DNA from: Ostrea edulis
Taxonomy: Eukaryota
Assembly (NCBI RefSeq): GCF_947568905.1
Contig: NC_079167.1
Coordinates: forward strand, 91,140,001-91,204,000
Length of the DNA stretch: 64,000 nt
Direction: 5' to 3'
The notes under the pieces are model-generated. The model was not told where the DNA came from. It did not search any database and saw only the letters and a list, made by a program, of their open reading frames with translations. This document shows positions 9,001 to 27,232 of the stretch, in pieces. Each line of letters starts with the position of its first letter. The first letter of the stretch is position 1. The position numbers and the translations under genes are program-made.

Positions 9001-12000
9001 TTTCATCCCAGAGTAGTTTTCGATTCTGATACTGGAAGTACTACAGATGAAATATTTTTAAAGCTATTATGAATTTCCTATGCTCTGGTATATCAAAGTT
9101 GTTTTTTTTCTTCTCACTATTCTTTGTTTGGTCACTAATATCAGTTCACAGATGGTTGTTCAGATCAAACTATCTTAAAACAGACCGAGACCTGTAGCTT
9201 AGACTAATGTCTCATATCCAAAATTGATATAACATTTCGTTTCTAGACCCTAGTTCACAAACACATTTTGAATATTGGAATAGATGACTGATTGTTCATC
9301 AAATAACTTGATTTGTGAATTACAGGTTTAAAGTAAGTCTGTTCGGCAAGAGGAGTAGCGCTTGCGCGGCTTCGGATGAAATCAATTTTTGTTGCTTCTG
9401 TCCACATTCGTAAAGTTTGATCCAAATCCGCTCATCCATATGGGAAGAGTTTTGGAAGGTGACAGGTTATGTAATTCTGTTGTACATCATGAATATTTAA
9501 ACATTTTATCATATAAACTTTGCAATTTTTTTTTCCCGAATCAATTTTACTTACAATGAACACAACGATCCCCGCGATTACAACGAGACAGGAGAAGACA
9601 GCTATTAAAGCGATCTCATGAGTCTGTAGTGGACACTTCCCACAATCCTTTGGACAGGTGGAACAGTCTTCTGATTGGTCTGTATCACAACTTCCGTCTC
9701 CACAAACTACAGAAAAATGTGGACTTTCGTAAAAGGGAGAAATAAGCAAAAGAATGAAGTGACAGTCAGTATTTACCTTTTCTGAAGACAAAGTGGAAGC
9801 AAAATTGTATCTAGTAATTCATACCAGAATCAGCGGTTGTATATTTGACAATTTCACAGGACCTTGCATGAAAAATTTATCTTTCATTTGACTAGCAGTT
9901 TATTCTTAAGTTTTAAATTTTTATTACATAGGTTAATTTAACGCAAAATATGGAACTTTTCAAACATTCTGTGTATGTATATCTTATTAAATTTACTTGA
10001 GAAACATTTCGAAATATGTATGATGAAGAGACAAACAGGTAATCCTGGGATTCAGAAAATCTTTACATGTACTAATAACCTCCCTTACCCCTAAAAACCT
10101 AACTGTTTAGAAGCATGTTTTACATTTACGAGACAGTAGTTCTAACGGGGTGAGACGCTTGAAATTTTATTTGCAGTTCGATCTGGCGCTTCGTTCGGGT
10201 GCGCGTAAAAGGTTTACCAACCTAAACACATACGCCAGTACTTCGATAACAGTAAATCAAACTGCGATTTTGAATGTATCAGATGACTGCCAAATAAACA
10301 TGTTGTAATGGCTAGTAGAAGCTTCTTGTTTCGATTCTTCCACAATTCAAATATGATAGAGAAATATTTCTCATACACTTTGTACACCAGCATTAACATT
10401 GTTGACAAACTCGATCAACTGCAAAGGAATCTGAAGATCAATTGCACAAAATACAAGAGATGTGTAAGCAGTATTTACAAGGTAGTTCCCATTGAACCCT
10501 ACGTCCGTGATCGATATGACGACGTACGATTACATCGAGGTCAGTCCAGTTCATGCTGATTGTTTCCGGGTCTATATCATGACAGAGCAGGAAAAAACCA
10601 GGATCATTATTACCCTCACTAAATCATGAAATTTACGAAATACCTAATGATTTCATAGTACCAATTTCAGCTGATTTGTACCACACGTTCGTGTGAACAT
10701 CTAATCTTCAAATGGCGTTCGTCGTCATCTAAACTACTATAGGTCGATCTGAATTTGTTTTATCATTTTATGTGTAAAAATTTGTGTTTAAAGTGTTGAT
10801 CCGTAATACAGAACACAGGATTCGGGTAAACTGTTATTCGTAAGTATCTGGTATTCAGCATTTGGTGAATTGACTTTGCAGAGATTACGTTTTGAGAATC
10901 TGTACAAACAGCCGCACTGACAAATGAGAATTACAGACAATGTTTAGAAGAAAACAATATTGTAGAATAACAATGCCAGTCACCTTCATATATACAACAT
11001 ACATGTATTGAGTAAAATATTTTTACTTTAATGCAATAACGCCTTTACTAGAGAAATGGTTGTCAATGGTTTCAGCATTTCAGAAACTCAAGAGGATCAT
11101 AGGCAGTTGTATTTTCCATCTGAAAAATGAAATCCTAACTCTTACCCAGGGGATCGTGGTTTGAACAAACCTGTCCCTACAGTATATGACGATGCTTACC
11201 TGTTGCTTGACATATTGCACACTTGTGCTTAATGAAAAAAATATTTTCAAAGAATTTTCCAACATATCCCTATGTAAAAATCAAATTCCCATTGTGACCT
11301 CACTTTGAATCCTGCAGCCATAGTATGACCTCACCTTGAACCCTGCAGCCACAGTGGGAACAAATTTGAATCTACACTACGTGAAGGTGCTTGAAAATTG
11401 ACCGGAAACAGTATCATTTCGTGATTCTTGAGAAAAAGAACTATAAAGAATGTTCAAACATGTCTATATACTGAAGTAAAAGTTCGAACCTCTCATGTGG
11501 TCCCTGGGGCATGGTGTGAACAAGCTTGAGTCTACACTACATAAGGATACGTGTATATTACTTTATTGACATAATATACTCTTTTGGTGCTTAAGAACAT
11601 TTCCAAAACTTTTCATATATACTTCTATTCGAATGAACTACCAGTATTGGGACAAGTGGTTAGAACAAACCTGAATCTTCGTTTTATAAGGCAACGTTCA
11701 TATACAACGTTTGATATTTCTGATTCAGTGGTTTTTCGAACCTTAAGAATTTCTGAATACCTCATCCCCTTAAGGTTAATCGATCCTCGTGTGATGTCAT
11801 AGGTTTTTGCAAATTTTTTTTTTTATCAAATTAAACTTTGCACATGATTGAAATATATCTTTCAGAAGAATTTTATTCACTGCATAAAATAAAAAAAAAA
11901 TTGGTAAACTATAGATATTGAAAAAGTTTATATTTTCAATAGATAATCAATTCTATATAATTAAAAAAAAACTATTGTCAAGGGCAATAACTCATATCCT

Positions 12001-27232: not shown

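Follow-up and report, generated by a model that had tools for sequence, protein, structure and literature searches.

A receptor guanylyl cyclase of Ostrea edulis with a predicted beta-sandwich ectodomain in place of the ANF receptor domain

The window analyzed here is a stretch of 64,000 nucleotides of Ostrea edulis DNA (RefSeq assembly GCF_947568905.1, contig NC_079167.1, positions 91,140,001 to 91,204,000 of the forward strand), with about 35% GC and numerous short open reading frames (ORFs) broken up by introns. On its minus strand, running from 27232 to 2441, splice sites and homology delineate a gene for a receptor guanylyl cyclase (rGC) with 20 coding exons and 19 introns, all of which are GT-AG and compatible in phase. 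The spliced ORF comprises 2799 coding bases, has zero stops or frameshifts, and translates into 932 amino acids. This is an intact 20-exon gene, the 5' half of which is the stretch first noted (9555-27232); it is the ortholog of Crassostrea gigas XP_011453230/K1R426, and its match to a real rGC far exceeds chance. The parts of the gene, in window coordinates and in the order of transcription, are the following.

27200..27232, minus strand: coding part of exon 1, with the start codon (ATG 27232) and the first 11 residues of the signal peptide
24689..24797, minus strand: exon 2, closing part of the signal peptide and beginning of the ectodomain (YHGFDN..YHCW..C)
21440..21581, minus strand: exon 3, ectodomain strands (RWVDPPP..NTTYEL..FYTWA)
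19285..19607, minus strand: exon 4, ectodomain core, with a 21-residue motif and IAHFK; canonical splice sites
9555..9706, minus strand: exon 5, six-Cys stalk module (a 17-residue motif) and transmembrane helix
6979..9040, minus strand: exons 6-13 (9040-8968, 8852-8717, 8498-8412, 8244-8101, 8006-7885, 7721-7516, 7435-7322, and 7098-6979), juxtamembrane segment followed by the kinase-homology domain; GT-AG introns throughout, with compatible phases
6807..6900, minus strand: exon 14, coiled-coil hinge (a 13-residue motif)
2858..6713, minus strand: exons 15-19 (6713-6486, 6171-6022, 4539-4441, 4335-4244, and 3092-2858), catalytic domain of the class III cyclase, leading into the C-terminal tail
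2441..2580, minus strand: exon 20, remainder of the C-terminal tail with the stop codon; in-phase acceptor

Exon 1 has an in-frame stop immediately 5' of its ATG and a GTGAGT donor, and it matches residues 8-18 of the C. gigas ortholog. Exon 2 is the sole phase-compatible candidate flanked by AG and GT that encodes the conserved peptide, and tblastn aligns it with residues 21-50 of a Mytilus protein (P0106). Exon 3 is bounded by canonical splice sites and gives collinear tblastn matches to Pecten, Mytilus, and Tegillarca proteins, and exon 20 matches the Mytilus C-terminus at 81%, also by tblastn. Exon 5, with the acceptor ..ctgtag before TT and the donor GTAAGT, directly continues exon 4 in every ortholog protein. 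The proposal of the first-pass annotation, made from the letters of the window, that exons 1-5 splice in frame was therefore borne out in all its coordinates, with canonical sites and compatible phases. Close upstream of the exon 3 acceptor region, the coding strand carries a stretch of roughly 40 T (21612-21668, minus strand).

The encoded protein has the domain order of an rGC: a signal peptide, a disulfide-rich, Ig-like (immunoglobulin-like) beta-sandwich of about 185 residues, a six-Cys stalk of about 26 residues, a transmembrane helix, a pseudokinase, a coiled-coil hinge, and a cyclase. Hydropathy peaks occur only at residues 1-19 and 234-256, consistent with a type I topology with one transmembrane segment and with an inferred signal cleavage site. 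Residues 1-232 hold 14 Cys and three sequons (N68, N106, and N163), together with an 11-residue His-cluster motif and a 19-residue six-Cys module; each of these counts had been given before and holds in the spliced product, as does the single transmembrane segment. On the intracellular side, translations of exons 9-11 match Pfam PK_Tyr_Ser-Thr/Pkinase, and the kinase-homology domain reads HGHLKSSN in place of HRD (HRDLK), which is pseudokinase-like. The region of the orthologs equivalent to the exon 14 hinge is assigned to PF07701 HNOBA. Translations of exons 15-17 match Pfam Guanylate_cyc (E 1.8e-19 to 2.3e-8), and the cyclase retains all its catalytic residues: D649 and D693 for the metal, E689 and C760 for specifying guanine, and N767 and R771. 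The metal Asp, E/C, and N/R residues noted earlier are thus all in place, and the receptor guanylyl cyclase is apparently active. Of the earlier description as an active rGC with a different sensor, the catalytic residues and the non-ANF ectodomain stand, and the activity itself is predicted from those residues.

The ectodomain is what sets this protein apart. Pfam scans of the ectodomains of the window gene and five relatives returned no family even at E <= 10, with chance-level rows only; PF01094, the ANF_receptor domain, is absent from all six. Nor is there any PF01094 match within about 2 Mb of the gene in a six-frame scan of the whole genome, which found 116 matches elsewhere; the non-ANF character proposed at first reading is in agreement with both results. 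A profile built from 43 ectodomains gave chance-level rows only against the sequence set of the Protein Data Bank (PDB), and a protein atlas search with exon 4 and the ortholog ectodomain as queries gave no usable match. The suggestion that the CGDGxC module recalls Cys repeats of amoebozoan and myxobacterial surface proteins found no backing, as the module matched no family apart from a chance row for NADH-G_4Fe-4S_3 (E 0.033).

An AlphaFold2 model was computed for the ectodomain of the C. gigas ortholog (P0111:26-239, 81% identical to that of the window) with the 43-ectodomain alignment as input. Its mean predicted local distance difference test (pLDDT) is 89.4 and its predicted template modeling score (pTM) 0.81, and it shows a nine-stranded sandwich into which two helices are inserted, with a short Cys-rich stalk at the C-terminus. 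The anticipated combination of a beta-sandwich and a disulfide knot is matched by this prediction of a sandwich followed by a small Cys module. The NIT domain, the sensor of another group of animal membrane cyclases, is helical; the Pfam scan of the ectodomain was empty for it too, and the model is built of strands apart from two short helices. Structure searches retrieved only generic Ig-like or macroglobulin-like sandwiches, with a best Z of 8.0, a value that the search tool describes as typical in the absence of a true match. The ectodomain is therefore modeled with confidence as an Ig-like beta-sandwich with a small disulfide stalk and, as modeled, is not assignable to any known family.

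Conservation was assessed over 118 distinct full-length ectodomains with a threshold of at least 96%. Residues at or above this threshold include eight Cys (C30, C46, C104, C109, C120, C121, C130, and C138), a structural group (W31, W53, W141, P140, G146, and G175), and a polar group (H124, N126, H128, T150, H151, and H182). Since H124, N126, and H128 alternate along one predicted strand, they are expected to point to the same side. The window protein has all the motifs of the family, namely C-W, CC-x-H-x-N-x-H-S-C, CGPW, TH, NWT, IAH, and the CGDxxC..CxxCPxDCGxC stalk, and its ectodomain matches family members by blastp with E values of 1e-145 to 1e-32. Ratios of nonsynonymous to synonymous substitution rates (dN/dS) against C. 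gigas, which are rough because dS is near saturation, are about 0.09 for exon 4, about 0.08 for the ectodomain, about 0.06 overall, and 0.02 for hinge and cyclase. By these estimates, the ectodomain is under strong purifying selection.

The same ectodomain is found far beyond oysters. A phmmer search with exon 4 yielded 100 proteins at E <= 1e-3, 14 of those at E <= 1e-30, and the taxa given here are taken from these 100 representatives and from additional recovered names. Among protostomes, rGCs of this subfamily occur in bivalves, gastropods, annelids, nemerteans, and a brachiopod, and among non-vertebrate deuterostomes in echinoderms, a hemichordate, and amphioxus. Fish members come from sharks, sturgeon, bowfin, and many teleosts, including a medaka protein (P0229) that carries the RefSeq name 'membrane guanylyl cyclase', and tetrapod members come from a caecilian, a skink, turtles, and many birds; a wallaby 'uncharacterized protein' is also among the matches. 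Outside animals, an rGC of the subfamily is present in the ichthyosporean Chromosphaera. The match lists contained no arthropod, nematode, or placental-mammal member of the subfamily, and none from Drosophila, C. elegans, mouse, or human in particular, although such lists do not prove loss. A Bacteroidota type IX secretion system (T9SS) protein (P0096) that matched exon 4 weakly by phmmer fails the ectodomain profile and was taken as a Cys-rich chance match.

The intracellular half leads to further members of the subfamily. When the intracellular part of P0111, the C. gigas ortholog, served as query, the best 120 proteins all lack PF01094 in precomputed Pfam lists, and 99 of the 102 new relatives recovered in this way match the ectodomain profile. 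The three that do not are two shorter records of 590 and 635 amino acids, which are probably N-terminal truncations, and one scorpion protein. The intracellular part of the oyster protein shares 55-58% identity with those of vertebrates. Because nearly all of the new relatives found through the intracellular part also match the ectodomain profile, the subfamily is coherent in both halves. Judged from these matches, the window gene is an ordinary member of a large and deeply conserved subfamily and not a one-off, and the subfamily is older than Bilateria.

Mapping of the taxonomic range and partner domains, which the first-pass annotation had called for, added protist proteins to the animals and the ichthyosporean, with the domain on bodies resembling seven-transmembrane (7TM) and TRP proteins. 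A protist-like protein of 1306 amino acids from an ENA metagenome contig (P0047) carries three tandem copies of the ectodomain (approximately 51-219, 220-399, and 400-577), followed by a class-C 7TM domain (PF00003) fused to a G-alpha domain (PF00503), an arrangement suggestive of a receptor joined to its own G protein. In the dinoflagellates Polykrikos (P0053) and Polarella (P0043/P0172), as well as in two assembly-derived proteins (P0045 and P0054), the domain is N-terminal and is followed by Ephrin_rec_like/TNFR-like repeats in proteins of 1000-1300 amino acids; in P0053, a TRP (PF06011) multi-pass region comes after the repeats. Receptor guanylyl cyclases and class-C G protein-coupled receptors (GPCRs) form the pair of receptor types that usually employ the ANF_receptor/Venus-flytrap module. 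The finding that the domain also heads a class-C 7TM body, whose usual module is the Venus-flytrap, makes a sensor role of the domain more likely.

ANF-type rGCs such as GC-A/NPR1 and GC-B/NPR2 share with the oyster protein the single transmembrane segment, the kinase-homology domain, the coiled-coil hinge, and a cyclase of class III that has the same set of catalytic residues. However, their ectodomain is a periplasmic-binding-protein-like PF01094 of about 400 residues, whereas that of the oyster protein is a beta-sandwich with a Cys stalk of about 210 residues. In addition, ANF-type rGCs are absent from the first 120 matches to the intracellular part of the oyster subfamily, whose members match each other across phyla in this part. 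Animal membrane cyclases with another sensor in place of the canonical ectodomain have a precedent in NIT-GC1/2 of Platynereis and the placozoan NIT-GCs, whose domain was originally identified in bacteria and has nitrate/nitrite as its presumed stimulus (bioRxiv 10.1101/2023.08.02.551600). Unlike these, the oyster ectodomain is all-beta and disulfide-rich and has no Pfam match, pointing to another sensor family. The ion- and pH-sensing rGCs of nematodes keep an ectodomain of the ANF_receptor type, and histidines have a role in sensing by GCY-14. These C. elegans receptors offer a possible functional analogy, in that a receptor cyclase senses small inorganic cues, such as alkalinity or salts, by way of residues in its ectodomain; GCY-14 itself is an alkalinity sensor according to the passage of PMC4883820 that cites it.

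Taken at its most direct, the gene is likely to encode an intact rGC that has a non-ANF sandwich ectodomain and works like other receptor cyclases. By analogy with these, the receptor would act as a dimer in which the sandwich domain senses an extracellular signal, and the signal would be relayed through the transmembrane helix, the pseudokinase, and the hinge to switch on the synthesis of cyclic guanosine monophosphate (cGMP). A homodimer prediction with two copies of the ortholog ectodomain gave a score of 0.00, which counts neither for nor against a dimer. The candidate residues for ligand contact are H124-x-N126-x-H128 on one strand, together with H151 and H182. The conserved His, Asn, and Thr lead to the speculative hypothesis that the ligand is an ion, metal, proton, anion, or small polar molecule and not a peptide of the natriuretic type. 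Three points weigh against this account of the gene: cyclase activity, dimerization, and ligand sensing rest on inference; the sequencing runs that contain exon 4 are low-coverage DNA, with none recorded as RNA; and some receptor cyclases, among them the retinal guanylyl cyclases, receive their regulation from inside, which means that conservation of an ectodomain does not by itself imply ligand binding.

The last of these points leads to the main rival explanation, in which the ectodomain serves structure, adhesion, or dimerization and control of the cyclase comes from the cytoplasm, as that of retinal guanylyl cyclases does through GCAPs. In its favor, the structure matches are generic Ig-like sandwiches, which are often modules of protein-protein contact. 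Nevertheless, the domain takes the sensor position on three unrelated bodies (rGC, class-C 7TM, and TRP-like), and the conservation of four His, one Asn, and one Thr at the threshold given above from dinoflagellates to vertebrates would be unusual for a spacer, and we therefore consider a purely structural module unlikely.

A second rival, which we rate as similarly improbable, is that the ectodomain is a remote relative of Cu/Fe sandwich proteins, such as lytic polysaccharide monooxygenases (LPMOs) of the AA10/AA15 types, PmoD, or superoxide reductase (SOR), and senses metal or redox state through its His residues. The top Foldseek match is indeed an AA10 LPMO (6ndq, E 2.7e-4, template modeling score 0.32), and PmoD and neelaredoxin also appear within the top ten. 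The Z values are 7.9 for neelaredoxin (109 residues) and 6.2-6.4 for LPMOs (118-121 residues), and four His are conserved at the same threshold. However, SOR, SoxZ, NPC2, and carbohydrate-binding modules (CBMs) tied with the AA10 LPMO in the structure searches. The likeness to these Ig-like/macroglobulin sandwiches (LPMO AA10/AA15, SOR, SoxZ, and NPC2) is one of overall topology, with Z 6-8 over 95-121 aligned residues, but there is no sequence relationship, the template modeling scores are only about 0.3, and the Z values fall within the range of unrelated sandwiches. What sets the ectodomain of the oyster subfamily apart is its two-helix insertion, its four putative disulfides, and its His/Asn strand. 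Furthermore, the mature protein is predicted to begin with Y/W-H in animals and with N-Y-A-L-G in protists, so that there is no N-terminal His brace, and the order of His along the chain does not appear to match that of the SOR ligands. Homology to LPMO and SOR was rejected as a family assignment, leaving a resemblance of fold only; for LPMO, the His1 brace is missing and the fold match is weak.

The remaining explanations concern the gene and not the domain. That it is silent or decaying in O. edulis despite its intact look is very unlikely: no RNA run containing the exon was found, but the 2799 coding bases are free of stops and frameshifts, the splice sites are canonical throughout, and the overall dN/dS against C. 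gigas is low. Of the sequencing runs over 19100-25000, X7-X9 are low-coverage genomic DNA, with contigs that span the 19285 donor and sit in introns, and X1 has just a 156-nt piece within exon 4.

The junction between exons 4 and 5 (19285 to 9706) was singled out from the start for confirmation, and four independent lines of evidence uphold the gene model. It is in phase, with G and TT forming a Val codon between ..NVIPKS and CGDGSC, and spans an intron of 9578 bp. The window protein aligns with the C. gigas XP_011453230/K1R426 cluster at 79.8% identity over residues 1-930 with 0 gaps; its closest proteins are those of Crassostrea/Magallana (about 80%) and Saccostrea (about 78%). Two runs yield Logan contigs (L007 and L008, 3.0-3.2 kb) that carry the coding sequence of the C. 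gigas ortholog without interruption; being intronless, these contigs must derive from mRNA. In the Mytilus RefSeq protein, residue 211 corresponds to the end of exon 4 and residue 213 to the start of exon 5, so that nothing is missing in the 9.6-kb intron. Predicted proteins of Pecten, Tegillarca, and Mytilus are collinear with the window exons and join exons 4 and 5 directly, so that no extra exon in 9707-19284 is present in the ortholog proteins and exons 1-4 are collinear with one ortholog protein instead of belonging to another gene. The length of the intron and the lack of O. edulis RNA reads over the junction could be read as signs of an artefact, in which exons 1-4 come from another gene or hidden exons restore an ANF_receptor domain, but the gapless alignment to an mRNA-supported ortholog, the direct joining of the same exons in three other bivalves, the same exon order in a paralog across a 2.7-kb intron, and the absence of PF01094 matches in the region leave this the least credible explanation of all.

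The paralog in question, another receptor cyclase of the subfamily, is a neighbor of the gene. It spans G000:C4:91114451-91140000 plus window positions 1-1083, with its ectodomain exon at C4:91129232-91129555, and has the same exon order, with 2.7 kb between the equivalents of exons 4 and 5. It is convergent (tail-to-tail) with the rGC gene described above, with the two stop codons approximately 1.36 kb apart, and a second C. gigas gene, A0A8W8NHD2 (P0251), is its ortholog at about 69% identity. Since the paralog has its own C. gigas ortholog, the duplication predates the split of these oysters. A gap of 200 N occurs somewhere within the 40 kb upstream of the window. The part of the paralog that falls within the window and the tandem arrays are as follows.

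1..1083, plus strand: last three coding exons of the paralog (about 1-89, 205-294, and 877-1083, by tblastn); the 5' part is upstream of the window
302-755: tandem array, 31 nt x 14.6
3543-3711: tandem array, 24 nt x 7
21168-21316: tandem array, 37 nt x 4
26428-26603: tandem array, 21 nt x 8.4
29380-29637: tandem array, 44 nt x 5

The first four arrays are intronic in the two cyclase genes, and the array at 29380-29637 lies upstream of the start codon at 27232; those at 3543-3711 and 26428-26603 produce long spurious ORFs. Within introns 1-3, the stretches 20479-20675, 21858-23039, 23434-23630, and 24813-25000 show very high summed depth and many variants in all four runs, including one of another organism, and are probably dispersed repeats or transposon fragments. 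The region 40001-44000 is unlike the remaining window in its GC skew (+0.35 to +0.45) and GC content (0.40-0.45).

Textbook rGCs carry one kind of ectodomain. The kinome study of the oyster reports 23 RGCs in C. gigas and, in its account of them, does not discuss ectodomains (PMC4883820), and a 2023 review lists seven characterized subtypes of membrane guanylyl cyclase (PMC10061024). Full-text searching, which did not cover the older medaka OlGC papers, found no account of the ectodomain or the subfamily; given the curated-looking RefSeq name of the medaka member, a prior medaka cDNA report is possible. Proteins of the subfamily are already in public databases as automatic predictions, misleadingly named 'ANP receptor 1/2-like'. 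The novelty therefore lies in an unstudied subfamily and an unnamed domain, and not in the window gene itself. A more far-reaching interpretation, which we offer tentatively and hold to be possible rather than probable, is that these proteins form an undescribed ancient class of rGCs and an 'eighth' type of vertebrate membrane guanylyl cyclase, kept in fishes, amphibians, reptiles, and birds and absent from the ecdysozoan and placental-mammal matches of this survey, with a new ectodomain family whose His/Asn cluster binds a metal ion, a proton, or a small inorganic ligand and which serves as an alternative to the Venus-flytrap on protist class-C-type GPCRs and TRP-like proteins.

The lack of members from Drosophila, C. 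elegans, mouse, and human in the match lists would explain why the subfamily has gone unstudied, and the members in medaka, cyprinids, and birds make it testable in model animals. The ligand, once found, would be a new input to cGMP signaling and would define a new extracellular sensor domain common to protist GPCR-like and channel-like proteins.

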